64,000 nt of DNA. Origin: Thalia democratica. Its lineage: Eukaryota. A program made the translations under genes and the position numbers. The notes beneath the pieces were generated by a model. That model was not told the origin of the DNA and made no database searches. It saw only the letters and a program-made list of their open reading frames with translations. Of this stretch, positions 67-54,665 are shown in pieces; within the stretch, counting starts at the first letter, position 1, and the number at the start of each line of letters is the position of its first letter. Where the stretch lies: the NCBI GenBank assembly GCA_965202585.1, contig OZ241830.1, positions 434,001 through 498,000 on the forward strand, written 5' to 3'.

Positions 67-3000
67 CAATACATTGTGGAAAAAACTTCAATTTGAATCC
101 TTCATCCAAACAAACAGCAGATTCACTTCCCACAAACTTGTGCTTATCATCCGGACATCCGAAAAACACTTCCCTGTTGTACGCGAAAGTAGGGTTTTCC
201 CCACGATCGAGAACAACGCCCTGGTCGTCCAACACTTGCACTTTTTCGCCCAATCTCGGGTACAGACATCTTATTTCTATTGGTTTAAAGCTTTAGTTTT
301 AATCATATACTTACGTTTTTCTGTGTATGATTATGGCGGCGTCGGTGATATTAAATTTTATTACATATTGATTATATACAGTTTGAAACAAGTATAATGT
401 GTTAGTGGTTTACTGAATCAATATTTTTGGTTAGTTTTGACGTCAATTACAACATAAATATTAAACTCAACAAAACATTCGACTTGATTAGAAATTAGTC
501 AAAAATAATTAATTCGTTTTTAATTTTTTTATTACATTTTTTTTTTCTGCTTTAGTTTTATTCTTGTAGTTTTTCAAATCAGCCTATACAGCAACAAGTC
601 ACAAACAAAATCAGTTCAATCACATTCATTCCATGCATTTTAATAGAAAATTTCAAATAATTTGTGTTACAGAGGTCAAACAATTACACTTTTCTAAGTT
701 TTCTTACCTTTTTTGAAGTTCGTTGCAGTACTGTGATTCAAGTTTTTTTTTCAAGTTAAGTATCATTGAAATGTTAAGTTTCTTTACTTAAATTTTTTAA
801 CGAACGCTTCAAATGGTTACAACTTTAGGTTTGTAATTTTGGTTTATGTACATGTAAACTAATAAAAAAAGCTTTGAACATTAATAAGACGAAATAGATT
901 AAAAGGACAAAATTTGTAAAGCTTAAAGTTGTTTTTGTCGTATATTTTAATTTTAAAAGTAAACATTTAAAACCAAGTTAAGATTTTATGAAGAATCTAA
1001 TATGTGTTATATACCAGCACACTGGGGTAGATCCTGGTGGTGATAATCAAAATTCATGTCCTCATCGCACGACGCGTTCATGCTTCCGACCAATTCCCAT
1101 CCCTCATCATTACACTCGAACTTCACCACATCTCCATACTTGTAAGTGTCATCTTCACTCTGCACATTTCCATTTTCATCCACTACCACAACTCTATCAT
1201 CGACTAACACTGGGTACTTACACACTATTTCTGTTAAAGTTTGTTAATTTTTACGTAGTTACCTTTGAACGGTGAACAAAAATTTCTGCTGTTTTCTAGA
1301 TAAAATATGAAGTGTTTTTGAATTTCAAGAACACTGATTTATGTTGTGGTAACTAACTTTACTTGACTTTCCAAATAAGTGAAAACAAAGTTATTCGAAC
1401 AAATTTTTCTAAAAGTTTACTTTTGTAAGATTGATTACAGTTCTTTTACACATTCTAAACCAAAATGTAAAAAAACTCTTATAAATTGTCATACCTTCAC
1501 AACTGGGATACTCGTCAATATCAAAAACAGTTTCTTTAGTGCAATTATAAGGACCTGGATATCCATTTAACTTATATCCTTCATCACAGAAGTAAGTAAT
1601 GTTTGAATAAATATCATAAAATTCATTTAATGGTTCGTAATAACCATTTGTTATATTATTTGGTGGTTCGCAAAACTCGTCAGAGTAATCGTTACCAGTG
1701 AAATCGAAGTCTGGGTCTTCTGTTTTTGTAATGGTAATGGTTTTTCAAAATTTAGTATTTATACTAAAAAAATTATGAAGCTTAAAAAGCTGTTGATATG
1801 AAAAGGTAACTTATTATTCCAAAAAAGTATTATTTTAAAAACTAATTGAACGGTGTTTTCTTTTATACTGAAAAGAGCCCAACTAAGTAAGTAAAGATAC
1901 ATACGCTTTAAAAGTTTAACAAACGATTCAGAAACAAAAAGAAACAATGGGCCATACTCTTAATGAAATTTGTTATATGATTTTACATTTTACAAATTTA
2001 AATTTTACAAAAACAAACTTTCACATTTAGGCATATCATCCCCATTGTAGATGATTTTATTATTTTTACCGCATGTAGCTTTGTCACTTCCACTCAATTT
2101 AAATCCTTTCTTACATTTGAATTCAATTTCATTGTTGTAATTTATATAATCAACTTCATCAGTATTTATTTTAATGTTATCGGCTTCATCTTTATCAGTT
2201 TGATTAACATGAAATATTTCAACGTTGCTATCATCCAACATCGGTACTGGGCATTTTATTTCTGTTTTGAACATTGTTTGTGTTTGAAATTAGTGTTTAA
2301 TAAAAGCTAAAAACAGAACAACGAAATCGTTTTCTGTATCTTTTGAACTGACAAAATAACTTAAAAAGTCTGGAGTGTTTTCAAAATCACAGGATTGACG
2401 TTCAACGCCGGAAACGAAAACAACTGTTTAATTTCCAAGGAAACAAAAAGTAAAAGTATAAACAAACTATTTAATTTAGTGTTTTTATACATAATGATCA
2501 AACAAAAATACAAACTTTCACATGTTGGGTACTCTTCAATATCAAACTCTCCTTCTTCAGTGCAATTATAAGGACCTTCAAGACCCATCATGTAATACCC
2601 TTCATCACAATAATATGTAACATTCGAGTATATCTCATATAATTCATCTAATGGTTCGTAGTAACCATTTGTTATGTTGTTTGGCGGAAAGCAAATGTCG
2701 TCATTGTAATCGTTTCCCTCAAAATTGAAGTCTGGATCCTCTGTTTAATTTTTGCACTTTTATTTCAACTGATGTAATTTTTTCAACTACTTTAAAGACT
2801 TCTTACTAAGTTTAAAGTTTAAGAATATTATTAACCCTATAATTAGACTTTAGTTATTAAATTTTACTTCTCACAACTTTTACAAAAAAACAAACTTTCA
2901 CAGGTGGGCAACTCCTCATCGCTATACTGAAAAGAGCCATATTTTCCGCACTCAGCGTGTTTGCTTCCCGCCAATTTGTATCCCTTCTCGCATTTGAAGT

Positions 3001-6000: not shown

Positions 6001-9000
6001 TTCTTACTGTTGATAATTAGAACATAAAACAAAAGAAAATAATTAAAATGGATGAAGACTACTTGGAAATAAAAAATTAAATTTGATTTTAAATAACTTA
6101 ATAAAATATAATTACAGAACTTTTGTGTTTTTATTGAATTATGTATAAAAAAAAAGTATGTTGGTAAATAATTAAAAAAAAATCTTTTGAATGACTTATT
6201 TATTATAATTTTATTCAAATAGTTATTTACTAACATCTTAAATCGACTTTATATATACTTATAGCTTCTTTTTGACTTAGGAAGGTTTAATTAAATAAAT
6301 AAAATCGGGTTTTGATAGTAAAAGTTAAGTAATTTCATACATCAGCTTTTATAAAAAAAATTTAATGTTTAAGTATTTGTGTCTGCAAAACTTTGTTTAA
6401 AAGAAATTCAGTCAGATATTCAAAAGTTTATTTTTGTTAAGCTATTAATTAATATTAACTACTAGGCTAATTGTTTAGCGAAGCCCAGTTGTTAACTACT
6501 TTAAGATAAAAATAAATACCTGTTTATTTTCTATGTCTATATTAACAGCTATATCAAAAATATCTAAATAAAATGAATATTAAAGTACTATTTGTTAAAA
6601 ATTAAAAACTTTATGTATTTTTTAACTATAATTTTCTTTTGTTTCATTAAATTTTTTTTTTGCATTTGATAATTCTTAAATTCAAAACTTTTTTTTTATT
6701 TTTAAAAACAGTTTTATGAACTCATTAAGATAAGTTGTGGTATACTTGATATAATCAATTTAAACTTTTTTTGTTAAGTTACTTTGCTCGTACTCAATTT
6801 AGGATATACCGTTGAAAGTATGATTTAGCTTTAATTGTGCTAAAAATAATCTAAAGAGTTTTAAAAAAGAACAAACTTGAATTACTAAGCTTAAATTTTA
6901 GACCATATGAATTTTTTTATTTTTAAGATCGACAGTTTTTAAAAACAATATTAGAATAATACTGTACATAAATTAACAATGTTAACTTGATTTACTTCAC
7001 GTTTTTATTATTTAATACAATAAAACTAATACCTGTTTTCTGTTCCATACAAGTAGGTTGATCTCCGTTCAAATTAAAATTTCCGTCCTCGCCGCAAACT
7101 GTAGAGTTCATGCCCTCAATCACGTGGTTGGTCGGACAAATGAAGTTGATCTTCGTGTTGACAGTGACGTCATCAATCACGATGTTGTCGCCGTCATCAA
7201 CGATCAAAACTCTGTCGTCGTTCACCATCGGTAGTGGGCATAAGATTTCTGTTGAAATATTATGAAAAGTGTGATAAGTTGTATGATGTTTTAATTGGGA
7301 ACAATTTTTGCACGAAAACTCTGTATTAGGTTTATCGGTTTGAACTATCACATGTTCGATTATAAACTTTATATTAAAAGAAATATGAATAAAACTCTGC
7401 AATTTTAAAGTTTTATGAACTTCAAGTAGAAAATGAATGTACTTTAAAAAGAGAATTAAGTACAAGACTCACAATAAAACTACTAATGATTAAGCTTGAT
7501 AACGTTTGCTTGAAAAATATGTTTTAATAAATTAATATAATAAATAAAAGATTTTAACAACCTTCGCATTGAGGTTTCTCATCGTTGATGAAAGTGAACA
7601 TTTCATTCCTGGAACAAATAGCATTTTCGCTCCCAATAAGTCTGTAGCCCACGTCACAATTGAACACTATGACGTCATTGTAGACATACTTCACCCCGTC
7701 ATCTAAAACATTTCCTTCTTCGTCTTTGAAGTTGATTCTTTTGTCGGCTAGTTTCGGGAACGGACACTCAATTTCTGATTGAAAAATTATAAATTTAGTA
7801 GAATAATTAGAATATCTAAACAAAAGAAAGTTAAAAAATATTTGCAAACATCTGTTCAAGAGTTTTATTAGAAAAAAAATTATTTTACCATTAACTTAAA
7901 AAAAAGGAAAAGTAAACGAAAAGCTTTATAAACAGAATAATTAGTTTCTATTTTAATTTGAATAAAGCGTAAAATATTAACTTATATAAACTCAAACTAA
8001 CTTTCACAACTAGGATACTCGTCAATATCAAAAACGGTTTCTTCAGTACAATTATAAGGACCTGGATACCCATTTAACTTATATCCTTCATCACAGAAAT
8101 AAGTAACGTTTGAATACACATCATAAAATTCATTTAATGGTTCGTAATAACCATTTGTTATATTATTTGGTGGTTCGCAAAATTCATCAGAGTAATCGTT
8201 ACCAGTAAAATCAAAGTCAAAATTTGGATCTTCTACAATATTTTAAGAGTTATTTTTTTGCTCAGCGTACTATTTAAATAATATATATGATGATACAGAG
8301 TTGTAGAAAGGATATAAAACATTTTTGAATGTGTTTTAGTTTAACTTTGTTTGTGTGACAAAAAATTCTTAATAACAGCTCTTCAGACTTTTATTGCTAA
8401 CAGGATAAAAATCATAAACTAGATAAATGAACTTGTTTTATAATGTCATGTCCACACTACGCTAAGGAAAGCTTAAAATTTGTTTTTAATGTGTGTTTTT
8501 TTGATTGTTATCGCCTTTTTTTGTCTACTTATATGCTTATTTTTATATATGTATGAGTTTTTGCGTTAAGTTTTTTTTAAAAAGCCATTTAAAAAAATAA
8601 ATCCCCGTTTTTAAATCTGATGTGTTTACAGCTTCTAAAGTCTAAACAAAAATGTATTAGATTTTAAAATGTTTAATGAGTAAAAACCTTTATATTATAC
8701 TTGTTTAAAGTTTTATAAACTACACTTAAGTTTAGTGTTTGTCTCACTTGAAGTTAGCTTACGTATTTTATCTCTCACTTAAAATTTATCATAGATTATT
8801 TTTTACAAAACATTAATGCTTAACTTTGTTTTGTTTTTATTTTTTATCATTGCTTTGTTTTATTTTTCACTTTTTTTTATGTCTGAAAAGCTTTTACCCA
8901 GCTTATTACATTATCAGATACTTTTTGTTTACAGTGAAATATACTTAGTCACATATAAATTTTTCAAAGACCTATAAAACAATAACAAGCAAGAGAAACA

Positions 9001-12000
9001 ATATATATGCGCTTAAAAGTTGTTTGTTATGTTAAAACCAACCTAAAACTCTTACAATACTTTAGCAATTTTATAGAAAATTATGGATAGAGTTGAGATA
9101 ATTCTTTTTTATATATTACAAAATGAAAAGTAAGTAACATATACAAACTTTCACATTCTGGTTCTTTTTCTTTATTAAATTTAAATTGTGATGATTTATC
9201 GCAAGTAGAATTTTCGCTTTCTTTCAACTTGTACCCCTTTTCACATTTGAAATTTATATTTTCTCCATACTTGAACTTTTCATCTGAAGTTCTATTTATT
9301 TCCTTGTAATTTTCATCGTAAATATGAATTTTGTCATCAGATATCATTGGGAGAGGACACAATATTTCTGAAAAAATGTATCAAAAGGTACATATGTACT
9401 AAAATTCTTATATAGATTTTAAAACTTAATTTTTGCTTTGTAACGCGGGTACCAGATCAAAAAGTTATTGATCAAACACCAACGCTATTTGAATTAGTAT
9501 TTTACTAATTATTTAATCGTAAGTGACGATGTAAATATATACTTTTAGTACCTTCACAATGAGGTTGCTCAATTTCATCAAAATAAAAGGTTTCCGAATC
9601 CCCACAAGTTGCATGCTCACTACCGACTAAATTGAAATCGTCAGGACATTTGAAGTTTAGTACTTGGTTTAATTTAAATTTCTCATCTTTATCAAGAATT
9701 ATGTTCTCGTCATCAAATGCAGTTACCCTGTAGTCTTGTAACATTGGAAATGGACAGAGAATCTCTGTATAATTTTTAGTTTTATTGTACTTTTAGTCAA
9801 TTACAATCTATGAAGGAAAAGTTTCATATTTAAATTCTCTCAATGTTCAAGTTTAGAAAAGTTTAGTTAGGACACCTTTGCATTTAGGTAGTTCATCTTT
9901 TAAATGGAAAAGTCCGTCTTGTTGACAAACTGCTTTTTCCGGTCCTTCTAACTTAAAACCTTCTTGGCATTTGAAGTATATCACTTCATTATACTTTGTT
10001 GGATCGAACAAAGCAATTCCACTATCATCTACAATGAAGACGAGTTTCATGAACTCTTCGACTGGCAGACCCTCATTCAACATGGGCAGAGGACACTCTA
10101 TCTCTGTAACATGAAGTATTAAGTTATATTAAGTTAGACAAACAAATTTTTATTTTCAATATGTATAAAGTTAAGTCAAGCTATTTTTATTTTAGTTAAG
10201 TTTAATGTTTGAAAAAGTACAAAATAAAACTTTAGCTCACAAATAAAGTAACACTATAGCTAGCTTTTTTTTGAAACAATAAGTTTATAAAGTTTATTAT
10301 ATATGATTTTAGTATTTATTTAATTAATTACCTTCACAAGTGGGCATATTACCATCCTCAGTTGATACCACTCCTGTTTCATCACAAACAGCTTCACTAT
10401 TACCATCTAATTTGTAACCTGGTTTGCATTCAAACTTGGCAACTTCCTCGTACTTCAACTTGTCACTTTCTTCCAACTCTACTCCATCGTTGTTTGTTAT
10501 GAGCAGGTTGTCATCCAAACCCATCGGGTACGAGCATTCTACTTCTGTAAAATGATAGTGACGTCACAATTAAATTTGAGTAAGCGCTTGGTAAGAACAA
10601 GTTTTATAAATCTTCAAGCTTAAAAGCATGTAAGAAACAAAACTATCGTTTTATAACTCAGTACATGTTTAAAGTAGTTAGCTGTATAAACATAGCATAT
10701 ACAACAATCTATATCTTGTTGGTTTTACTAACCATAACAGTTAGATTGCAAATTGTTTTCCAATTTTAGCTTTTTCATTAAAACCATTTTTAAGTGTATT
10801 TGAAGCACACCTATAACTAAAAAAAATAGGTTCTTTTACTTGTAACGATAAAATATTTTAGTTTGAAGCTTACGAGATTTGTTGTTTTATAGTATTTTGT
10901 AAAACGGGGATCTACCGAATCTTAATCATCTGTTACAAATGAAATCTGAACAACAAATCATGATCCTTTTAATTTACAATAAATTATGAAACAGTAAACC
11001 TCATAAATGCTGTGTTTAAACTTTTAGGTGGGAACTGTAGTTGCTTGATTTAAAATCAAAAGTAAAATTACAAAGATTAAATCAAACATTAATTTATTGA
11101 ATAAAAACTTTCAAATATAAAATAAATAACCTTCACAATGAGGGGGCTTATCATTTCCGTACATAAATTTCCCTTCCTTCTTACAAACAGCGTTTTCGCT
11201 ACCCACTAATTTGTACCCCTTCTCGCATTTGAAATTGATGGCGAAATTCAGTTTGAAGTCTCCATAGTCTTCCTGCTTCATCAGCTGCCTCGTTTGATCC
11301 ACAACCATCACATTAGAGTCCTCGAATGTCGGATACAAGCACTTTATTTCTGTGAAATGTTGAAATCAAATTATAAATTTATTAGCTCACAAATTCTTTC
11401 ATGAAACAATGTTACACTGAGTTGTTAAATGAGATTAATGAGATCTTTAGTGACACTTTAAATATTATTAAAAAAAAAATTAGATTAAAAAAGAATTTGA
11501 ACCGGTCTGTTATGTAACGAATCATGTATGTAATAAAATTACAGAAACAGTTCAAATAACCCAGATTTAAGAATTCTAGCAGCGTAGATTTTAATCGCCT
11601 TTTATGCTTGTACGAAGTTACAAAAGCAAGTTAAGTGATTTATTAACACTTTAAACCTTTACAGCTAGGAACACCATCAGAGAAGTGAAGTTGCTCATTC
11701 GGTAAACAAACTGATTCTTTAGATCCGTCCAAATAATACTCTTGAGGACAAGTAAAGTGGATGACTTCACTGAATCCTACGTCTTCGCCAATATACTTCT
11801 TGAAATTAGAATCAAGAATGTTTATGTTGTCATCCTCAATAATTTGTAATGAACATCTTATCTCTGTAAATTAAAAAAAAAACTGTTATAACATATTCCA
11901 TATTTTTTTATTATTATTGTATTTTATTTTATTGTTAATTGTGTTTGACGTTATAAAAAAGCTTTAAACAAACACGCTTGGTAAATGAGTTAGTTGGTAG

Positions 12001-41400: not shown

Positions 41401-44400
41401 GTATTGTATGAATATTAAATTTTTAAATAGACTAAAAGCCCTACAAGTATTCACGTGTTTTTAAACGTATTTTTTCAGTTTTAATCTTATAATTGCAAGT
41501 TTTAAAAATAAAAAGTTCAATTTCATTGACCAAATGAAAAACTTTGTGGCTTTTGGGTAGCTTAGAAAAAATAATAAATCCTAAAGCATAGATACAGTAG
41601 CTTTATAATTAATATATAACTTTCGAAAAGGTGGAAATTAATTTATATAAACAGCTTATCAGTCATTATAATCAGTTAGTAGTACGTAAAAAGAAGATAT
41701 TGTGCAAAAACTTAGAAATAAAGCTGTAACTTTAATGATAAAAAAATTACACTTTTAGAACAAAGTCAAGAAAACATCGGCGATAGTCTACAGAGCCTAA
41801 GCTTGGAATCTCGTATGCCGTGAGACAAGCTTAAGATAGGGTTGATCATACCAATTCGATCATCAGACCACAAGTTTCGGTAGACTGAGATCGGTTTCGT
41901 TTTTATTAGGACTCATCAGTCAGTCACAACCGAAAAACCTGCAGTCGTCAATCTACAAACGGTTTATCATGCTTTACCATGAGGCAACCGTTTGTAAGTA
42001 ATATTAGAATAACGTAAAAAAAAATAGAACAAAAACTATTTGTATTTTAGGTAATATTCTAATGTTTTAAATTTTATTCGAGAAAAAAACTTATTTTATA
42101 AAAAAAAATTAATTGTTTTAGTAATTTCAGAAAAAACGAACAAAGATAGTCGTAACATAAGTAACCATTTTTTTTGTAAAATAAATTAAATAAGTATAAA
42201 TAAAATTGTATGAATAATCATTACAAATCAGTATTAATTTACTAAATAAAAAATTAAAAAAAGAAAACAAACAAGTTCTCACCATAAGATAATCGTTCAT
42301 GCACCTCACATTAGCCTGGACGTCCATATTGACCACTTTGGCCTCAATAAACATGTTGGGACCCCCAACTACCTGCCAACTGCAGTCCTTGTTGCTAGGA
42401 TACAGGTGGGGGTGGTTTGGGGAGAATATTTCCTCCACCTCCGATGCCATCACTATTCCCCCGCACACTGAAAAATATTAAAACTCTCTCCAAGTACAGT
42501 ATGTAGTTTTGAACTATAATGACTCGTTGGAATATATTTGACTAAAACCCAATATTTTAAAAGTTTTGTAAAAGTTTTAAGCAAACAATATGTATATTAA
42601 AATAAAGTTGTTTTAAGTTAATCTAAAAAGTAAACAAATAGTAGAACTAAACTAGTTAATATGTACATAAAAACTTGTATATGTAGATGTAGCTACTGTT
42701 CTTAATAAAATATTCAAAAATTTTTAAAACGTTTTAAAACCTTGATTTATTTCTTAAGCACAAAATTACGCTTTAAACGGTTTTAAAAAGTGTAGAAAAA
42801 TAAAATAGAACAACAGAAAAAGAACATTTAATGAAAATGAAAGAGAAAACGAACAAAATAGTTAAGATTTTAATGGTTACAGTTTTGTTAATTGTGGTTG
42901 TGGTTTGTTGATACAAATTAGTACCAAAGTCAGTTACAAGATAACTGTCAAGTAAAATGGTTTTGTTTTAGACGTTTAATAAGTTTGTTGTCAGTAATTT
43001 ACAACGGTATTATTAGTGTCGTTGACATTTGGAATGATAAATATTTTATGGTTTTTTTGTGGTTTTAAATAAGTTCTGGCTCCTAATTTAAATTGTTTGG
43101 TCCTATATGCGTAAATTTGGAAAAAAAAGTCCTTTATGATGTTTAAATAGTGTATAAAAGTACCAAAGTTCCACTAATGTAAATGTTTTATTGAAACATG
43201 CTACAAAAGTCTGTTAAAATATACTATACACAATTTTTAAATGGCAAATGAGTTCATAAAGGTTGCCGAGGAAAAATAATTGCCCTTTTAACGTGTTTTA
43301 AGATTTCGCAATGGTGAATATAATTCAAACATAAGATACTTTAAGTATAATGTCATCAGCATAGTGTAATAATAACGTATGTATATTTATAAATTAAATG
43401 AAATTATCACCATAAAAACACTTGAAGACTCTAAATACTCTTTCTTAGCATCCAAGATATATATGTTATTAAGAAAATTATAATTTGAATTTTTTATAGT
43501 AGAATTTGCACTCAGGTTTTTAAAGTTAGATAATATCATTAGTGGCTTGAAAAGTTTACATTTAGTTTGAAAACTACTTACTTGTCATTTTTTACTAGCA
43601 TAATGTAAACAAAAAGCCAAAACACTGGTACTACGTACTAGTTTTATCAAAACACTCATATGACGTAACAAGCTAGTTTTATGAAAACACTGTTATGACG
43701 TACCAATTTTATTAATACTTCAAAATGAAGTAACAAACCAGATTAATCAAAACAGTATTATGACGTGCGAGTTTTATTGAAACACTTTTATGATGTTACA
43801 GAATGGTTTATCAAATTTTTTATGACATAGCAACTTTATCAATACAGTTTTATAACAAACCAGTTTTATCAATACATCATTATGACGTAACAAACCAGTT
43901 TTATCCAGTCTGCAACTTGGTTTTCTTCCACTGTACTGTCCTGACAACTGGCATATCAGTTTATCGTCCCCATCAATCACGAACCCTGGTAAGCAATCGA
44001 ACTGGGTCATTCCCCCGAACCTGTGAGACTTGCGACCAACTATCAGGCCGTTGGCTGGCGCTGTTAGTACTCTGCAACCTGGAATAAGTTCGAATGTTGA
44101 ATGTTTTTTAGTTTGAAGTTGTTTTGTACAATTTGTTGTTACAGTTTTATGAATGTGTTTTTTATTTGATTTGTTAGGAAAGTGTACGAGTTTTGTTAAT
44201 ATGTTAAATGATTAGTATTGAATGAAATATATTAAGAGAAAGTAGTTAGAACTATTCACCATATAATTTATGATTAAATTTTGAAAATATAAAAAGTAAA
44301 TTGAAATAAAAAATTAATAAATAGTACTACAGTATCAGGTGAATTGTACATAAACAATGTGCTTATAAGTAAAAAGTTTATAGTCTTTTTTATAAAACTG

Positions 44401-47400
44401 CTTTTGAAAGTATAAATCAAAATTAATCAATTTTTTGTACTATTTAAGTAAAACAGTTCAACATATATAAAACACAAAATAACGTAAAAAAAAAATTAAA
44501 GTCAGAACTTTTAAACTTTACGAAAACCAATTACGAACTGCAATTCGAAAAAGCCTATAATAAGAAAAAAAGTTTAAGTTACAAAACTAGACACAACTTA
44601 AGACTTTTGACAAACAGTCTAAGAAAAAGGTAAATTTGCAAACTTTTATACCGAGCTAAAGTTCAAAATAGTTTTCAAATGTTTTTTTAATTGAACGTAA
44701 AACGAAAGAATTTCATTCTAAAAAAATTAGCAACTTAAATTACACTAATACAGTGAAACTAAGCCCTATAATTTAAAATTTACAATAAAATTTTTGTTGA
44801 GGTTACGTATGGAATTTAATTTAATAATTAGTGGTTTTCCTACAAAACAATAAAATTTAATTTGGTTGAAATAAACTTTGGTTAAAGTATGAGCTATAAA
44901 TCTTTATAAAAGCTTATTTTAATTTTGTTTTAGTACTAATTTCTTGTTTAAAACTATTACGTTGATAAAACGACCAAGTTGATAAACTTTTAAGCGTTTG
45001 GAAACTAAAGTATTTACTACGTTTTAGTTTTTAAAAAAGCGTAATACCATTAATTACAATAAAATACTATTAACGCGATTATTAGTGTAAGTCTGATAAT
45101 CCAATTAAATAATTTCATGGTAACTATACTGGTTTTGTTCTACTAAAATGTAAACAAAAATATGAAATTATTGGTTTTTAATCTTGTATACACTCTTATA
45201 CTTTTTGTAGTGGTAGTTTTCTGGGTTTGAATAAAAAATATAGAGTTACATTTTTAGCTATCGAAATTAAGCTTATTTAGAACTTGCCATTTATATTTTA
45301 ATTAAAACGTAAGCTCTTAAGTTTTACTTTTTGACGTTTAAGTTGTTTCTAAAACAAGCAACAAAATCTGTAAAAGGTAATATAAAAAATTAAGTATTAT
45401 TTACGTAAACTATTTTATTTATAATAGTATCACTAAAAATAGACTATATATGTTGTTGCTATTATATTGTTATGAAATAAACAAGTAAAATAAGCAGTTA
45501 TAAAACAAAAATAATAGTATTTACTAATAACAAAAATTGAAACGATATCAACAAGTTTAATGTCAAAATTTGTAATTTATTTCTAACGCGGTAAATTGAT
45601 TGAAGTAAAATTATATATATATGTATAAAACTGATTTAACCTTTAACTTATTGTCATTAGAGTTTACTCTATTCAAAAAATAAAAAGCTTACAAATGTAT
45701 AAACAGATTTGTGTAACTCTATTGAATTAAACTATTTATTAGTATTATATAAGATATAAATAGCTATTTTTTTGAATTTTATATCTATACTAATGAGGAA
45801 TGTTTTATAGATTTTTTAATTTCGTTTTTTTTTCAAAATAATAACAATATATAAATTTGCAAAATTCAAGAACTTAAAACACAGCTTATAACATACTTTT
45901 TTATATACTGTTTTTATAAAAGTTGAACTAGTTTTACAAACGTTAAGAAAATTCTATATTTATAAAAAATGAAAGTGTACTAACAAAAAATTTTCGTATC
46001 TTGCGTGACAGATTAAAATTGAACTTAAAAGCTACAATTAAACACACTTATTGCCTTTTTTAACATTTAAAAAGTTTTTAATCTGCAAAATAGACCTATT
46101 TGGTGAATCATGGGTATAATTAGGAGTTGTTATTTGTAATTATTGCAAACATTTCTTAAATATTGAAAATAGTGAAAACTTTTCTAAGCATGGAAATTTT
46201 TTTAGCTTGCAGTTTAATCAAACAATTAAAAAAAAATATTTTTGTGTTTTTTTCAAAAACAAACAGTTTAACTTTGAAAAAAGAGTAAAAGTATTGAAAA
46301 TAAATTTATATTTACAATTGTACATTTACATAGTATTACTACGCCAGTAATAGTTATATTTTTAAGCACTAAAAATTAAAAAAGAGCACCTACTGACTTA
46401 ATAAATGCTCTTTTAAAACAACACTGGGTACAAACAATTTCAAAGAAGGGAAATAACCTGTTTTGATGCACTTTGGGGGAGTGCCGAGCCAGCCTTCTGA
46501 CCCGCATAACAGTTCGATGGGCCCCACGACAACTTCTGTGGGGTCCGAACACTCGAACCTGACCGTGGTCCCTTCCGTCCAGGCTTTCTGGTCACTTGGG
46601 ACGGGTAAGACGTTTGTGTCGGTTTGCGGTATCGAACATATTATGTCCGTTTCTGTAAACGTTTGTGAGGAATTTTAATGAGTATTGAAATTAATATTCT
46701 ATTTTGAAAAGAAGCTTTAGTGTTTAAAATTTTGAAAATTAAATTTAAACAGTACAAATAACTTTTATTATGAGAACTTAGTTTAATTTAAGTTTTTAAG
46801 TACAGGTTGTAGATGTATATAAATTAAATAGAGATACTAAAAGACAGAAAAAAACGAACTAAATAGCATGACTATAAAGTACTTAGTTGTTTCTTCAAAA
46901 CTATAATGACGGAAAATTCTAAAATTATTTGAAACTCATAAACAAACATAGATGAACTGTTTTATAAATACTAATTAAACAAACAAACCCGCATGCATGC
47001 AACAGTATCTGACTTTGTAATCGTCACACTTCCCCCCTTCAACTTGATCCTCATCCAAGCATGACACTCCGTACGTCAGACTGTTCCTCACAGCTTGCTT
47101 TGTGACGTCATAACCACCTTGCGTAGTGCTTATCTGCATGCCAACAGGGTGCTCGCATATGGACGGGTTGTTGTTGCGGTGGTCTGACAGCAGTTCCCTG
47201 TTTCCATTGGATAGAAGCTCCTGATTGGTTGATTGGGTGTCCACATTGTTCCATGGTCCCCATGAGTTTGACGGACAGTGACCAACCGTGTCAAGGCCTG
47301 GTAGAAATAAAACTATTTGATAAAATACTTTACAGTTTGTCGATGTTATATGTGCTAGTGTGGTAGAATTAGTTAAAAAGAGTATTTTCAAAACAGTTTA

Positions 47401-50400
47401 TTTTGTACATTTCAAGTATTATTATTGTTGTGTATCTTTAAACTGTATAAAGATTTTAAAGTGTAATTTGACTAATATTTCTAATACAGTACATTAAGTA
47501 TTCGTTGATATTTTTGCTTTTCTTTTACTAGAAGTTGAGACTAGTACAAAAGTTTTTGAGAGCTTTTGTCTTATTTTTATAAAAACTTGAAAATATAATT
47601 AAGTTCAACAGTTTGGATTAAGTTTTTCCTAATAAAGTATATTTCAAAAAAATTAACTTTACAATTTTAAATACGCTTATCAATCTTAAAGTTATCAAAG
47701 TTTAAAATTTTTTATTTATTCATTATACTTCCTTACGAAGGTGTTTAATTATTCATCGTGTTAACTCTTTGCTTTGGGTTATGCCACATACTTTTAGAAA
47801 CACAAGCTATTAGATATTTAAGCACAAAAATTAAGTGTTTACTTTTATTACAGTTTGAAAGTATAATATATGAACTTTTTTTTGATAAAATCATTTTTAA
47901 TACTTTTTCAAAAAAAAACATTAAATTTAGATGTGAACGAGTCGTTTCTATGAAGTCAACGAAACTTAAAGGTCAAAATGCATGAAATTTAAATGATATG
48001 TTTGTTTTCTAAATAATATAGACCAAACTTTTCTGAAAACTTTAGTTGTAAAAAAAACTGATACTTACGTGTACTAAGTTTTTTATTCATTTTTTATATA
48101 ATGAAATGGAAGCTATCTATCATTATATCGATCAGATGAAAAAACTATATATAGCTTTTAAAATGCAGCTTACAATGTATTTCACACTTTCTAAATGATT
48201 GATTATTTTATGCTATTTTTCTTAACAAAAACAAAAACATTATTTAATTTGAAACTGACAAAACTTTACATAAACTAAAGTTCTAGCTCTTTCTTAAAAT
48301 CTTGCTTTTAGCTTTTTTATCAATATAAGTCAAAAATATTTTCAATCAGTAGGTTGTTTTTTAAATAATGTAACGTTAATAATTATGTATTTAAAAGAAA
48401 TGTTTTAAATTATTTACATAAGGTTTGAACAATCAACACGATTTATTTTTAAACAAAAAAAATTGTTAAACAAAACAAAAAAAGTGTTCAACAGTTTTAG
48501 AGTACAAACAAAGCTTATTAATAAACTTATTATGACGTCACAACGTACCGGGAGGGGCGCATCTGAAATGTAGGTCGATGTACTTTTCAGTACCGGGACA
48601 CGGGTCGCCTAATTGTGACGTAATAGCACGTAATGTGCACATCTGTTTACCCTGGCACTCCCCCCAAATTTGTTTGAACGCTGTTTGCGATTTGCATCGC
48701 GTGTTCATTGTGACGTCATTATCGGCTCTGCATCTGTGTGAAATAATTGGTATCAGTGCAAAGAAATTTTTTTAAAGTAAAAGTTATGAACTTGCTACAA
48801 AAGTTTGAAAAAATCTATAATTAAAAAAATGAAACATAACTTAAGTATTTTGCTTAAAACTATAAATTTTATTTCATTAAACTTATAAACACTTTATTAT
48901 AGCAAAAATAAAAAAAAGTATACTATTCAACTCAAGGTTACAAAATAATCTCACGTATGTGAGTCGGATCTCCCCCAGAAAGCATCTTCAATGTAAATAA
49001 CAGATCCCCTGTTCTTACAAGACACCCTGTTACCCACTCCTTCACAGATCTTCGTCACAAAAGTGTAAGGTGATCCTGGGATCATCAAGTCGTTCCCAAA
49101 CTGGATCTCCTCTGTTTGTTTTAATTAATAATTTTTAGCTTTTAATAGCTTTAATGACTTTGTTTTTATTTATTGGCTACTTAGATAGCACAAAAAAAGA
49201 GTGACATGAATCTCCTCTAAAAAATGTATTTTCCGTTTTTAATACATCAAGTATCAATGACCAAACTCTTAATGGTATTATAGCAAGTTTCTATGACAAA
49301 AGGCATCAAAATTTTTTTATAAAGTTATTAATTTTTTCTTTTCTATTATTTGTTTTTACGAACGAAAATAATAAAAGCGCAACTATTTTTTTATTTTTTA
49401 CGTGGTTTACTAAATAAAAGCACCTCAGGAGTTTATTGTTACTTTTTACTACTTTACTGCTTCAAAAGTCAGGTAAAAGTTTAGATTTTTTATATTGTAA
49501 GCATACTTAAAACTTGTAGTAAAGAGTTGACTTAAATTATCTATTTTTGAATAATAACTCTAGCGATTCGTACTTAGAATCATCAAAATAATGTTTGCAA
49601 GGAATTTAAAAACAAGTTTAATGTAAAAAAAATAAATATAAAATGTATTTTAAGCTTAACAGTATTATTTCTTGTGAACATTAAAAAAGTTATTTAAAAG
49701 CCGCAAAAAGTAATTAGAATATTAAACTTGAGCAACTAAAATTTGAGTAAAGTATATTCTAGTAATAATTAACTTTTACATGATAACATCTAGTAAGCGC
49801 GTAAACCGGTACATATAGGTACAGACATGTATTAAAACTTGTATTTTGGAATACAAGCTCATTTGTATGTTGACTTTAAAATACTTGGTGCACTTTTTAA
49901 AGTTGGAAATTTTTCAATTTAATTATCTGTTTATAAATATCCCTTTGTGTAATCACTGTAGGTATAAGAACAAATTTAGGTAAATTGTTAAGTTTCAGTT
50001 AAAATGCTTTATACGACTTTAATTTTCTTCACAGTTAAGAAAATTGTTACTTAATTAAAGTTAAAAAAAAGCTTTCCCAAAAACTAACTGTACCTAACTT
50101 TAGTTCAAAGCAGTAGTTCAAATACTTTAAGTGGTTTTTAATGTTTATAGTGGAAGTGAAAGTTTTCAGCAACTTTCAAACAAATCATAATATTTACGAA
50201 ATTCGAAGATAAATTCACCGCAAGCAAGTAGCCTCGCACGCGTTTAAAGTTAAACATCAAACTTTTAACTTCTAAAACTTGTAAGTTCTATTTGTTTTAC
50301 TTTGATGTTTACTTTATTCAGTTGTGATATTTCTTTTGTTTTATAAGGTTTTTGATATAAAAGTTTTAAGTTATTATAAATGAACATTGCTTATTGCTTC

Positions 50401-50846
50401 TAAAAATTTATACTAGTCTCGTTCTATTACATATTTAATTATATAAAGTAGTAATTTTCGTCTTTTTTTGTAAAGAAAACTTTTTTTTTAGATGCTTGAA
50501 GCTCATAGTATTCTTATTAAAAAGGTTCAATAGTCATTTTAAGTCAGAAACTTATTTACAAATATTTAATAAAAATATTTACACACAAAAATGTTACAAT
50601 CTCTCTAACTATCTACCTAATTTCTCTAAATACATTAACTTTCTACTTTTTGAAATTGAAACATTTTTTGTCATATAGAAGTATTTTAGGTACACTGTAA
50701 TCTGCGACTAACAAGTCATAATTTTATCATTATTATTAAATGAACAAAATTTCTATACAACATACAATATTACCTCTGTCTCCAGCTCTCAAAGTACATC
50801 TGCAGGCTTGAACAAACAAAAGGAGCAAGCAACAAGTCGAAAGCAT
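67..50846 (-). CDS. Gene A: giant secreted mosaic protein (SUEL lectin-WxxW-2xSushi-CUB-VWD/C8/TIL x2-EGF x2-at least 27 Sushi); 52 coding exons in window, 3' end beyond position 1
   Basis: Manual exon chain with GT-AG boundaries and consistent phases from ATG 50846 to exon 67-276; 9907 coding nt (~3302 aa) with no in-frame stop. Exon coordinates are given in the sub-features. FCGBP/zonadhesin-like VWD core, but no orthologue is recognised. Confidence 0.9.
4106..4195 (+). promoter_or_regulatory. Candidate promoter of gene C: CCAAT box, 12-bp palindrome and RFX X-box-like motif
   Basis: agCCAATcag 4106-4115; aactacgtagtt 4151-4162; GTTACATAGCAAC 4183-4195; all within 200 nt upstream of ATG 4288. 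Confidence 0.5.
4288..5618 (+). CDS. Gene C: nested antisense 3-exon gene, 317-aa protein with predicted signal peptide, possible TM helix and basic C-terminus; function unknown
   Basis: Exons 4288-4796 (CA|gtgagt), 4991-5162 (aacag|A ... GTA|gtgagt), 5346-5618 (gccag|ATC ... TAA) join in frame (954 nt). Lies in gene A intron 3109-7032. Confidence 0.8.
8002..14775 (-). repeat. Duplicated four-exon Sushi block: 14554/14117/13696/12990 vs 9876/9552/9149/8002
   Basis: Same order of module types in both blocks (PTKYNEVIYF type, FPMLQD type, NRTSDEKFKYG type, FDFTGNDY type). Confidence 0.85.
17926..18079. repeat. 28-bp direct repeat containing TGACGTCA (17926-17953 and 18052-18079)
   Basis: aagtgact(g/a)atgagattatgacgtcata, one mismatch. 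Confidence 0.8.
20912..21487 (-). CDS. Gene A calcium-binding EGF (21365-21487) and EGF with internal insertion (20912-21085)
   Basis: DIDECEESPC..TQCVNTEGSYKCICLDGY..C; DPCKENPCHENAKC[insert]FTCTCNEGFNGNGFFC. Confidence 0.88.
21764..23286 (-). CDS. Gene A C8, TIL and TILa-like domains (set 2), exons 23142-23286, 22546-22694, 22180-22304, 21764-21874
   Basis: YCGQITDPDGDFAICHGAVDPESFFESCVYDVC; CPEHSTF..SRCQNTCQDP..C..FTEDCVCDMGYLKDGDVCVRESECGC. Confidence 0.87.
23603..25024 (-). CDS. Gene A VWD domain 2 with GDPH site, exons 24742-25024, 24070-24222, 23603-23778
   Basis: CMSWGDPHYQTFD..KYDFMGACSYVM ... INGEEV ... LPEFYKTKVEGLCGNFNDDPDDD. Confidence 0.92.
25382..27727 (-). CDS. Gene A C8, TIL and TILa domains (set 1), exons 27571-27727, 27176-27308, 25718-25953, 25382-25506
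   Basis: C...CH..INPDFFFDSCVEDAC (C8); CGPNAYYSSC..C..C...[26 protein letters not shown] (TIL); NDCKLECKC..GKLAC..GC (TILa). Confidence 0.88.
28198..30690 (+). CDS. Gene D: nested antisense single-coding-exon gene, 830-aa Ser/Asn/Lys-rich, probably disordered protein with PLDLS (CtBP-binding-type) motifs
   Basis: 2.5-kb ORF in very AT-rich DNA. First in-frame ATG is 28198, with an in-frame TAG upstream at 28162. PLDLS at 29350 and 29518; variants ALDLS (~29122) and CLDLS (29665). Lies in gene A intron 27728-34028; pyrimidine-rich acceptor ending at 28140. Confidence 0.8.
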   Translation: MLNNIKMSNLSQTNLSLSLEKSSFETTDPTINSFVKVIYDDQIEEVCNEHSSSVDPTKCNLDSSVDPCVTSPLKQDTNAELLDISKLTSAKIFCDKSNIKKQAYKIKVRLPRLEANFCNSDSIAFSNPYHKIQAEKSNFTFTKAAKSAEKIQLNDVFEVKKSSSSLCLKKSTLFKKVSRIYQTIKSKISLFKPSSCELRFHKQYLENVTDWTKNKQKNFSDNQKSKSLYCVTNEVLTQNRDVNKEKLGVPINLINKSLSNYSTITCISSVFSEVSSKCSFENYEKNKTFIKSFVQNKIEPCKNQESGIALDLSVRSNKLRVSTQVENDNKNTTCGTYKEKYESQSLLSEHCGEGVLFVVKQLSEQVLSQQITCNNQQSSEYPDKPLDLSVKKMGAQQSTSAKLCDKSLINNNENVDGLMLKMNKHQLVVHKSFTDALEKSPLDLSFNSSHSQKSQENSLSTKVTSQSFASTNDESQLSNNLTKIENHISCLDLSYNSKKDYIKSSTNLEQNYHMEKSINQSFTNKTTSQNFYSIVNESELGNVNCFTNSDKNLFENQIISSNLSNVRNKNKVDSPKIEGNYFSTNCFNEFTPPLCNNLKNKSQATIETDLFNNCYSKFVADKLANRNDNYIDCKITDKNKTFIRPAAAIVSENSEHENLTRNDNNLNTTSKKLKKLTKSRQSVINISSENNSKSVTNSPKTGVLDDQKTSLKLKKVKMIKNKNRSNFNIPTPYKRLNGSISSISSSEGEQTISNISFKTIYTSPRVAPSTKSISSDSFKSFTDNKPADKKKTKTVMKGNYDDDLSSLGASTLVYLNQHFSNNTIDSNISN
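31974..32270. mobile_element. hAT-superfamily (Charlie-like) MITE, 297 bp
   Basis: TIRs cagtggtcttcaa / ttgaaaaccactg (12/13); 8-bp flanks tcatagag and ttctagag (6/8, resembling the NTCTAGAN target preference); subterminal gtgcac-type repeats. Confidence 0.75.
32387..32609. repeat. 39-bp direct repeat (32387-32425 and 32571-32609)
   Basis: tgataa(a/g)caatttataactccgtagaattgtgttattaa, one mismatch. Confidence 0.8.
34029..40430 (-). CDS. Gene A VWD domain 1, exons 40288-40430, 38988-39095, 36917-37085, 34029-34143
   Basis: CYGMGQSHFSTFDG..FPGDCSYVLAR ... INDELIELP ... VQYDG..VTLPQFFMGKIEG|LCGNYDGNGDND; phases 1-0-0-1-2 join in frame. Confidence 0.88.
40810..42467 (-). CDS. Gene A CUB domain, exons 42283-42467 and 40810-40981
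   Basis: CGG...IFSPNHPHLYPSNKDCSWQV...CMNDYLM / LFNG..KICG..SNENIMTINFHSDDRTTGKGF (canonical CUB). Confidence 0.9.
41788..41996 (-). mobile_element. Structured ~210-nt GC-richer intronic element around the hammerhead (probable Penelope-like or retrozyme remnant)
   Basis: Hairpins 41954-41996 (11-bp plus 5-bp stems) and 41798-41833 (8-bp plus 4-bp stems); possible closing helix CUGCAG 41944-41939 with CUGUAG 41793-41788; no ORF. Confidence 0.5.
41875..41936 (-). ncRNA. Degenerate minimal type I hammerhead ribozyme motif (Penelope/retrozyme-like)
   Basis: Minus strand: UUUCGGU-UGU-GACUGA (stem I 5') CUGAUGA GUCCU-AAUA-AAAAC (stem II with two C.A mismatches) GAAA CCGA UC (minimal stem III, cleavage after C41889) UCAGUC-U-ACCGAAA (stem I 3'). 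Confidence 0.7.
43638..43910. repeat. Degenerate minisatellite (~30-36 bp unit, agttttatcaa.acac..tatgacgtaacaa.c) overlapping a Sushi exon donor
   Basis: About 8 imperfect copies; the last copy runs into the exon end at 43896-43910. Confidence 0.75.
43896..46652 (-). CDS. Gene A two N-terminal Sushi/CCP domains, exons 46458-46652 and 43896-44078
   Basis: CSIPQ..VRFECSD..VVGPIELLCGSEGWLGTPPKC and CRVLTAPANG..TQFDCLPGFVIDGDDKLICQLSGQYSGRKPSC; both phase 1-1. Confidence 0.88.
46989..47297 (-). CDS. Gene A WxxW (mucin/CILP-type) domain exon
   Basis: CPSNSWGPWNNVD...E....R...P.ICEHPVGM...GVSCLDEDQVEGGKCDDYKVRYCC; phase 1-1 exon, 309 nt. Confidence 0.85.
48549..49111 (-). CDS. Gene A SUEL-type (rhamnose/galactose-binding) lectin domain, exons 48955-49111 and 48549-48733
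   Basis: KICEGVGNRVSCKNRGSVIYIEDAFWGRSD..C...ECQGKQMCTLRAITSQLGDPCPGTEKYIDLHFRC matches the SUEL pattern CEG..(Y/W)GR..C.GK..C...GDPCPGT.KY....C. Confidence 0.88.
50774..50846 (-). CDS. Gene A exon 1: start codon and signal peptide
   Basis: caaaATG then MLSTCCLLLLFVQACRCTLRAGDR (hydrophobic core); phase-1 donor G|gtaat joins the next exon in frame. Confidence 0.8.
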
Positions 50847-53800: not shown

Positions 53801-54604
53801 TAAAAACATTAAAAAACAGCTAATAAAAGGCTAAATTTATAAATGCACCACAAAAAATAGGCCGTAATTAAAATAATGCTTTGTTAATATAAAAGATATT
53901 AAAAGCGTCATTCTAATATACAAAAATATTTAGTTTTTTTTCAATGATAACAAATTGAATTAACTATTTGTAAAGCTTTTACTTAAAAAAATCGATTTTA
54001 TATGTATCATAATTGAGTTATTTTTTTGTTTATAAACATGCTAGACTTCCATAAATAAAAAGAATTGCTAAAGTTTTTTCAATCACAAACAATGTACTTA
54101 AATAATTTTACTAAGGTACTTTTTACAACGCTATAATTGCCTAAGTCTTTTTTTCATTAGTATTATAAATTGTTATAGGTGTATAATGTGTTTGTTCGAT
54201 ATTTACATGTTCAACTTTTTATAAACTTGAAAAAATCCAAGTTGAAAATAACTTTCAAAAAGTTTTAATCAAAAGTAAACAAAAAGTTAAATACAACTTT
54301 GTTTTAACATATTTCTACCAATTTACAACGTCTTTAAAGTTTTAAAATTTGTAAGTGAATTCGAATCATGAAAAGTGCTTAGAAACGACTTTTTAAATAA
54401 TTTTACTTCGTAATTTAGTAAGTTATCATTCAAAATTGTAAAAAAAGTGAAACTAAATTTCTAACAGAGTTTATTAGTTTGAAAAATTTCGTTAAAAAAT
54501 GTCCAAACAAACTTTACTTAAATTGTTTTTACAAGTAATTAGTTTTCAAGTGTTGGTGCAGCAATCAATAACTGACAACGGCCATATTGTTGTTACAACC
54601 AAAG

Positions 54605-54612
54605 TATAAAAG
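54605..54612 (+). promoter_or_regulatory. TATA box of gene B
   Basis: TATAAAAG ~60 nt upstream of ATG 54666. Confidence 0.6.
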
Positions 54613-54665
54613 CCCCAACTTCAAAACTTTTGTCATCAAACTTACTTGTCAACTCAAGTTGAATC

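Follow-up and report, generated by a model that had tools for sequence, protein, structure and literature searches.

What is encoded by the long run of cysteine-rich exons on the minus strand of a 64,000-nucleotide stretch of the genome of the salp Thalia democratica, and is its combination of domains peculiar to salps? The stretch (hereafter the window) covers positions 434,001–498,000 of contig OZ241830.1 (C6 in our working labels), within an 802-Mb assembly, and is AT-rich, with ∼27% GC. An earlier note on this DNA had read the order SUEL-WxxW-Sushi2-CUB-(VWD-C8-TIL)2-EGF2-Sushi27+ from position 50846 down to 67. Pfam matches and compatible splice phases on the minus strand bear out this order, and the gene limits and domain counts given there proved right, including the 27 CCP (Sushi) exons that follow the EGFs, which we recounted within the window. 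Judged by its domain order and exon colinearity, the gene is a member of a tunicate-wide family with predicted orthologues in Ciona and Styela. We think it probable that it is one real gene encoding, from head to tail, a secreted mosaic protein that would serve as a cross-linker of matrix or mucus with a lectin at its N terminus.

The minus strand carries a regular run of Cys-rich stretches from ∼50,900 down to base 65, whereas the open stretches of the plus strand of the window show no domain pattern. As the domain pattern is confined to the minus strand, the gene was assigned to it, and a plus-strand reading was rejected. Pfam scans were run exon by exon on stop-free stretches, and the gene model is a dynamic-programming chain, with splice-site and codon scores trained on the CCP exons, that covers the window and 20 kb to its left (pieces L009 and L010). 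The strict chain comprises 82 exons and 4,940 codons with zero internal stops, running from an ATG at 50846 to a stop codon directly after L010:2966. Two manual corrections were made: the acceptor of the second CCP was set to 44078, and a 108-nt phase 0-0 VWD1 exon (39095–38988), dropped by the strict run, was restored. The final model has at least 83 exons spread over ∼68 kb of the minus strand (contig ∼416,966–484,846), encodes ∼4,980 amino acids and extends ∼17 kb leftward beyond the window. Two candidate exons of the CILP region (L010:6443–6592 and 6140–6241), neither of which matches Pfam, were left out by the strict run. A first dynamic-programming model, which inserted ∼25 micro-exons to repair phases and included five INECET decoy acceptors as well as exons inside a nested plus-strand open reading frame, was discarded. 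The spliced protein was assembled in scripts only for length, phase, composition and motif counts.

From the N terminus, the full domain order is a signal peptide, SUEL lectin, WxxW, two CCPs, CUB, VWD-C8-TIL-TILa, VWD-C8-TIL and three EGF-type modules, followed by 29 CCPs, a cbEGF, seven CCPs, a second cbEGF, one CCP, VWD-C8-TIL-TILa and a CILP-type tail. This supports the picture first drawn in the earlier note, in which a single large secreted mosaic bears a lectin at its head, VWD assemblies of FCGBP type and a CCP rod of great length. The domain list of that note, correct in order, omitted the TILa after the first TIL, an extra Cys-rich EGF-like exon (21874–21764) and the exon (49111–48955) that by itself encodes the first half of the SUEL lectin.

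An exhaustive HMMER search with the WxxW exon, over 1.84 billion representative proteins, returned mainly multi-WxxW proteins, plus three proteins of Styela clava. Among the best 150 matches, SUEL and WxxW are combined only in the Styela proteins and in one of two contigs (L013 and L014) described below. One Styela protein, XP_039251867 (P0112; “zonadhesin-like isoform X1,” LOC120329335, 2,185 amino acids), has Pfam matches to SUEL, WxxW, two VWD with C8/TIL/TILa, six Sushi, EGFs, CILP, CILP_8th and CILP_C, all within one RefSeq model. The salp exons are colinear with this protein, and identity over the head is 32–43%, below that to Ciona. P0112 is under half the length of the salp protein, with six CCPs against 39; it has a TILa-like module and lacks the CUB, the third VWD assembly and the GDPH of the salp protein. 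Styela P0131 (“cartilage intermediate layer protein 1-like,” 1,010 amino acids) reads SUEL-WxxW-CUB-Sushi-CILP_5th/CILP/CILP_8th/CILP_C and, having no VWD assemblies and a single CCP where the salp has many, represents a minimal version of the head-plus-tail design. Styela P0121 (“zonadhesin-like,” 1,395 amino acids) has WxxW, VWD/C8/TIL/TILa, EGFs and two Sushi but does not match SUEL.

The Ciona orthologue escaped the WxxW search, which was confined to cluster representatives. A word-based search with P0131 found it: the Ciona intestinalis protein XP_078495955 (P0284; “IgGFc-binding protein-like,” 1,458 amino acids), whose 90% cluster also contains an older 6,372-amino-acid model, UPI00052148B7 (P0289), in which the same head is followed by ∼49 Sushi and ∼49 EGF modules. 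The N-terminal order in both is SUEL, WxxW, CCP, CUB, VWD-C8-TIL-TILa, VWD-C8-TIL, EGF and a giant CCP-containing array, and salp exons 2–24 match residues 38–1351 of P0289 in order, at 33–59% identity. The Ciona array alternates EGF with Sushi, whereas that of the salp consists almost entirely of CCPs; GDPH stands in both VWD domains of Ciona but has been lost from salp VWD1; and Ciona has a CCP between CUB and VWD1. Like the salp protein, the Ciona protein is acidic, with an isoelectric point (pI) of 4.66. The newest Ciona RefSeq annotation splits the older model into several genes, the pieces being 96–97% identical to it, and one of these pieces (P0288, corresponding to P0289 residues 2134–2586) is named “P-selectin-like.”

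Two more eukaryotic contigs, L013 (an ENA assembly, 36% GC) and L014 (a JGI metagenome, 41% GC), share the exon order SUEL, WxxW, CCP, CUB, with VWD in one of them. Transposase frames of hAT type and piggyBac type (DDE_Tnp_1_7) lie beside the gene and inside its introns in the former (L013:3400–5900 and 15400–17000). Word-based searches with two Styela proteins found no non-tunicate protein with the same domain combination. In the search with P0112, the next relatives were FCGBP, zonadhesin, tectorin, mucins and otogelin, which match the VWD part only, at 23–31% identity.

By Pfam, then, the N-terminal order SUEL, WxxW, CCP, (CUB), two VWD-C8-TIL, EGF and CCP array is common to salp, Ciona and Styela. 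The CILP-type tail stands on the same polypeptide in the salp model and in Styela P0112, but not in the Ciona models, which are possibly truncated or split. Three features are specific to the salp among the sequences compared: the array of 39 CCPs is nearly pure, a third VWD node is present, and VWD1 has lost GDPH. The term “lineage-specific,” used in the earlier note, thus holds at the level of tunicates and fails at the level of salps, given colinear predicted orthologues in Ciona intestinalis, Styela clava and the two further contigs. The combination that had seemed to match no named protein is already in RefSeq under automatic names, although none of its bearers is characterized in the searchable literature: searches on CILP in ascidians, zonadhesin-like proteins of Styela and salp mucous-net proteins turned up nothing describing this tunicate family, and two transcriptome papers on the Styela endostyle do not mention the family gene. 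The note had held that a widespread and already characterized orthologue would tell against its view; annotated orthologues do exist, but they are restricted to tunicates and uncharacterized, so that only half of this objection applies. Because the orthologues are annotated, misnamed and unstudied, we count the salp gene as an addition to a family that, though present in annotations, has yet to be described.

The head of the protein is encoded by the first exons of the chain, which, like all exons given below, lie on the minus strand. The initial exon (50774–50846) contains the start codon and the signal peptide (MLSTCCLLLLFVQACRC...); of all 19-residue windows in the model, the one here is the most hydrophobic and the sole such window at a terminus. 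This gene start faces a neighboring plus-strand gene across ∼3.8 kb (window 50846–54666). The SUEL/RBL lectin is divided between two exons. Exon 2 (48955–49111) encodes its N-terminal half with the YGR-type motif AFWGRSD; it was placed by the exon chain, has no Pfam match alone and is 56% identical to Ciona P0289 residues 38–78. Exon 3 (48549–48733) encodes the C-terminal half with the DPC motif DPCPGTEKYI (Pfam SUEL_Lectin, 3.1e-12, stretch 48771–48541), and the closest solved structures to this exon are those of sea-urchin SUL-I (5H4S, 3e-24) and salmon CSL3 (2ZX0). The domain retains eight Cys and both RBL signature motifs, defined as (AN)YGR(TD) and DPCxGTxKYL (PMC3269628); in the salp these read AFWGRSD and DPCPGTEKYI, respectively, the Tyr of YGR being replaced by Trp.

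Exon 4 (46989–47297) is a WxxW (CysD-like) domain (Pfam Mucin2_WxxW, 7.3e-15, stretch 47397–46978) that is 47.5% identical to Ciona P0289 residues 144–238 and holds the one WxxW motif of the model, WGPW, at ∼47251–47262. Elsewhere in the salp genome, SUEL and WxxW exons adjoin in tandem clusters on C10 (18.15–18.57 Mb) and C8 (36.09–36.18 Mb), so that the head is a two-domain cassette that recurs in this genome. A second cluster on C10 (31.96–32.11 Mb) contains WxxW only, with stops in some copies, and the top WxxW match of the genome (C9:44395894–44396151) lies inside a 1,240-amino-acid open frame. Exon 5 (46458–46652), the first CCP, has no Pfam match and a predicted CCP fold: its AlphaFold model has a pLDDT of 86.6 and gives a Foldseek TM of 0.85 to factor H CCP10-11, values that are biased toward a CCP result by the use of an alignment of the gene's own CCPs. 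Exon 6 (43896–44078), the second CCP (Pfam Sushi, 9.7e-8, stretch 44211–43777), begins at the phase 1 acceptor ttattccag/GT TGC (the slash marks the exon border). The CUB domain follows in two halves, exon 7 (42283–42467; Pfam CUB, 1.2e-9, profile positions 1–62) and exon 8 (40810–40981; 2e-7, profile positions 62–108).

VWD matches are spread over four exons of the window, with a best Pfam E value of 2.5e-11. The first VWD domain is built from four exons. Part a (40288–40430; Pfam VWD, 6.3e-9) has GQSH in place of GDPH. Part b (38988–39095) is the manually added exon, whose size of 108 nt and 0-0 phase equal those of its VWD3 counterpart; its splice sites were read, and it has no Pfam match alone. 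Part c (36917–37085; Pfam VWD, 2.2e-4, profile positions 78–138) matches Ciona P0289 residues 639–695, and part d (34029–34143), which contains EGLCGNYDG and was placed by the exon chain, is 51% identical to residues 697–733. An 841-amino-acid open reading frame without a Pfam match lies on the plus strand (28165–30687) inside the 6.3-kb intron between this last VWD1 exon and the first C8 exon. The first C8 domain (27176–27727) comprises exons 27727–27571 and 27308–27176, the second of which matches Pfam C8 (4.4e-4), and is colinear with P0289 residues 744–827. It is followed by TIL-1 (25718–25953; Pfam TIL, 2.6e-8) and TILa-1 (25382–25506; Pfam TILa, 2.8e-5, slightly under the family cut-off).

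The second assembly opens with VWD2 part a (24742–25024; Pfam VWD, 2.5e-11), which carries GDPH at ∼24970–24981 (model residue 855). Parts b and c (23603–24222; exons 24222–24070 and 23778–23603, the last with a Pfam VWD match of 1.2e-6) are colinear with P0289 residues 1028–1134, and C8-2 together with TIL-2 (22180–23286; exons 23286–23142, 22694–22546 and 22304–22180; Pfam C8, 9.1e-11, and TIL, 4.5e-3) with residues 1136–1275. A motif check on the model finds GDPH in VWD2 and VWD3 and GQSH in VWD1; all three assemblies read EGLCGN, not CGLC.

Three EGF-type exons (20912–21874) lead into the CCP array: the Cys-rich EGF-like exon at 21874–21764, which has no Pfam match, a cbEGF at 21487–21365 and an EGF at 21085–20912 (Pfam EGF_CA, 1.7e-9, and EGF_3, 2.7e-7). 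CCPs 3–8 (16124–20475) are phase 1-1 exons at 20475–20290, 19989–19771, 19534–19325, 19063–18884, 16826–16617 and 16345–16124. The stretch 7033–15052, which includes a duplicated four-exon cassette, contains CCPs 9–16 (15052–14840, 14775–14554, 14329–14117, 13914–13696, 13214–12990, 12772–12560, 11863–11657 and 11349–11131) and CCPs 17–23 (10544–10332, 10103–9876, 9764–9552, 9367–9149, 8232–8002, 7774–7562 and 7248–7033). CCPs 24–29 (67–3108), placed by the exon chain, lie at 3108–2896, 2740–2516, 2261–2019, 1719–1495, 1230–1015 and 276–67. Within the 3.9-kb intron between the CCP exons ending at 7033 and beginning at 3108, the segment 4000–6300 has a GC content of 33%, against ∼26%, and contains open frames of 100–200 amino acids on both strands, none matching Pfam; the segment may represent a decayed mobile element or a further nested gene.

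The gene contains 39 CCP-like exons, 36 of which match Pfam Sushi at E ≤ 0.01 (joint alignment A1). All are phase 1-1 exons, in which the two bases after ...ag finish a codon and the end reads C-x-G/gt, borders that leave four-residue linkers between modules. In most central CCPs of the alignment of all 39 exons, the near-universal Trp between Cys3 and Cys4 is replaced by Phe, with an insertion of 2–4 residues at the same place. A subtype of its own is made up of five copies that are extended at the N terminus by an acidic sequence with Tyr (DPDFDFTGNDYSDEF), which we take to resemble the contexts of tyrosine sulfation. Paralogous CCP exons are 91–94% identical in DNA, and their flanking introns cannot be aligned; a recent segmental duplication of the array was rejected, since the exons alone align. 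The differences between paralogous exons fall mainly at third codon positions: two copies of the acidic “DPDFDFTGNDYSDEF...” subtype, for instance, differ by 13 synonymous and 2 non-synonymous codons. This pattern marks the duplicated CCP exons as real coding sequence under purifying selection and, together with the uniform 1-1 phase of the CCP exons and the stop-free chain of 82 exons, sets the domain series apart from chance.

The C terminus, which the earlier note had proposed to seek by extending the sequence, was found to the left of the window: 10 further CCPs and two cbEGFs are followed by a third assembly, VWD (GDPH)-C8-TIL-TILa, and then by the CILP-type tail and the stop. Upstream of a cbEGF exon in this part, at L009:3480–4140 (window approximately −5860 to −6520), the minus strand holds four extra tandem copies of ∼130 bp that are 87–91% identical, each of which includes an acceptor and repeats the 21 nt (INECET) with which the cbEGF exon begins. 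The tail exons match Pfam CILP_5th (1.2e-10), CILP_8th (1.7e-7 and 1.6e-5) and CILP_C (1e-5, slightly under the cut-off on a single exon), whereas PF23591 (CILP) was undetected in them. Exon-wise genome searches with CILP_8th and CILP_C matched this gene alone, which is not a claim of uniqueness across the genome. The last exon ends ...SLVFSCE, with the stop codon right after it (L010:2966). A scan of the model found no transmembrane segment, GPI (glycosylphosphatidylinositol)-like tail or cystine knot, and the signal peptide is its only strongly hydrophobic 19-residue window. Membrane tethering was accordingly rejected for the modeled C terminus, and the “tethered” form that the earlier note had allowed is not supported.

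The composition of the model is strongly acidic, with a pI of 4.43 and Asp plus Glu making up 17% of all residues and 20% of those in the CCP array, and it contains 38 N-x-S/T sequons. Ser, Thr and Pro together account for only 16%, and there is no PTS exon. A mucin identity was rejected, the protein having no PTS region, CGLC motif or cystine knot.

How does this architecture compare with those of known proteins? FCGBP, zonadhesin and α-tectorin are the closest relatives of the VWD assemblies, being 27–31% identical over this part to the Styela orthologue. With these proteins the salp protein shares VWD-C8-TIL(-TILa) assemblies with GDPH and the lack of a PTS region. FCGBP, however, consists of 12–13 assemblies after FCGBP_N, while the salp has three, scattered among lectin, CUB, CCP, EGF and CILP modules. 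No match to PF17517 (FCGBP_N) or MAM was found in the salp exons scanned, and ∼40 other modules lie between the three assemblies. From gel-forming mucins and VWF the salp protein is set apart by EGLCGN at all three sites, the lack of a PTS exon and an end formed by CILP_C.

Vertebrate CILP-1 and CILP-2 share with the salp protein a WxxW near the N terminus and a CILP_5th...CILP_C tail. Vertebrate CILP is a secreted protein of the matrix, ∼1,200 amino acids long, and has TSP1 and Ig domains between these ends, with no lectin, VWD or CCP array. No TSP_1 or Ig match was found in the salp exons scanned, which were all but a few small ones, and the CILP-like ends are separated by ∼4,100 residues of CCP, CUB, VWD and EGF modules. 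At the level of Pfam domains, both ends of the salp protein (WxxW; CILP_5th/8th/C) resemble this vertebrate cartilage protein. Selectins likewise carry a lectin head on a CCP/EGF stalk, but the salp protein has neither a C-type lectin nor a membrane anchor; SVEP1 has comparable giant Sushi/EGF arrays, but VWA, pentraxin and HYR are missing from the salp exons scanned; and insect hemolectin/hemocytin is a secreted giant that also pairs lectin-like domains with VWD assemblies, but the salp protein lacks discoidin domains and a cystine knot. By analogy, it may work like a lectin-headed hybrid of FCGBP and CILP.

The domains would allow a role in mucus, matrix or immunity, and we consider it probable that the family, present across tunicates, supplies a lectin-headed cross-linker secreted into matrix or mucus. 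Once exported, the protein would be a long cross-linker of some extracellular gel or matrix. The most likely sites are two secretions of tunicates, the tunic and the pharyngeal feeding mucus, whose nets come from the endostyle (PMC6109156). Partner glycoproteins, particles or microbes would be bound by the lectin head through their galactose- or rhamnose-type glycans. Association nodes would be provided by WxxW and by the three VWD assemblies of FCGBP type, two of which carry the GDPH self-cleavage motif; CysD/WxxW domains give non-covalent cross-links in MUC2, and VWD domains of FCGBP and mucins undergo autocatalytic cleavage at GDPH. Arrays of CCPs form extended rods, and the run of CCPs with its four-residue linkers may provide a stiff, acidic, N-glycosylated spacer, presumably somewhat longer than 100 nm if the usual dimensions of CCP modules are assumed. 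The CILP tail would anchor the protein to the matrix.

Several points weigh against this proposal. The altered YGR motif (AFWGR) means that sugar binding by the head is not assured; with no CGLC, PTS region or cystine knot, polymerization in the manner of mucins is not expected; and, as Styela P0112 is without GDPH, self-cleavage is not conserved across the family. The Ciona models, possibly truncated or split, have no CILP tail and likewise no third VWD module, and the split of the locus in the newest annotation makes continuity of the array uncertain in Ciona. In addition, the salp gene model is a prediction made from genomic sequence by dynamic programming, in which a few small exons are uncertain, chiefly in the CILP region (L010:6926–5862).

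The same set of domains could belong instead to a factor of humoral immunity or clotting, namely a soluble agglutinin of the pattern-recognition kind whose lectin binds microbes, whose VWD assemblies build a clot or trap like those of insect hemolectin/hemocytin and whose CCP and CUB modules engage complement-like partners. SUEL/RBL lectins do bind bacterial rhamnose and galactose glycans and take part in innate defense in fish, bivalves and the horseshoe crab, and hemocytin, a giant combining lectin and VWD, is among the distant VWD relatives of the Styela orthologue; CCP and CUB are also typical of complement proteins, and the Foldseek matches of CCP 1 are complement regulators. However, neither a protease nor a thioester nor any further complement effector domain turned up in the exons scanned, the CILP tail is of a type known from matrix proteins, and the 39 acidic CCPs, mostly without the canonical Trp, look like a spacer and not a regulator. 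We regard this explanation as possible but unlikely. To see in the protein a developmental or cell-adhesion cue of the matrix, in the manner of Ciona Ci-sushi in tail regression and tissue remodeling, seems most improbable. The idea draws on annotation, in that the piece P0288 of the Ciona orthologue array is called P-selectin-like and so is Ci-sushi (KH.C11.274), which is regulated at metamorphosis (PMC8495957, PMC13225635), but this link amounts to a shared generic automatic name, common to many Ciona Sushi proteins, and salps are without a tailed larva.

A different kind of doubt concerns the gene itself, as the 68-kb model might merge two or more neighboring genes, one for the lectin-VWD part, one for the CCP array and one for the VWD-CILP part. 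A chain of phase 1-1 exons can stay in frame even where it crosses a gene border, the corresponding Ciona locus is divided in the newest annotation, and the salp chain is predicted from genomic DNA. Yet the Styela RefSeq model carries SUEL-WxxW and the CILP tail in one protein, no second signal peptide, in-frame terminal exon or gap in the exon series was found across the region, and the VWD and CILP parts, where phases other than 1-1 occur, also fit without interruption. Such a merger is very improbable, and we retain the reading of a single gene for a secreted cross-linker.

To our knowledge, the molecular make-up of the pharyngeal mucous filter of tunicates has not been described, nor is a description to be found in the searchable literature. 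That this family provides a principal structural or cross-linking protein of the filter is an improbable extension of the proposal. If true, the 39 CCPs and the third VWD node of the salp would represent a tuning of mesh geometry for high-throughput pelagic filtration, and the shared WxxW and tail domains would tie vertebrate CILP to an ancestral chordate pharyngeal secretion.

The component domains are all ordinary, and the value of the finding is moderate, its function being one that we infer. Three automatic names with nothing in common (IgGFc-binding protein-like, zonadhesin-like and P-selectin-like) have nevertheless concealed a conserved tunicate family, one that unites a rhamnose/galactose lectin head and FCGBP-type assemblies with both ends of CILP. 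Among the relatives, the central array varies from six CCPs in Styela to ∼49 alternating EGF and Sushi modules in Ciona and to 39 near-pure CCPs with an extra VWD in the salp; to judge from the exons, it has been remodeled through duplication of phase 1-1 exons, with the duplicates kept under purifying selection. The family thus offers a concrete candidate component of tunicate extracellular secretions, whether feeding mucus or tunic, and one that Ciona genetics makes testable.

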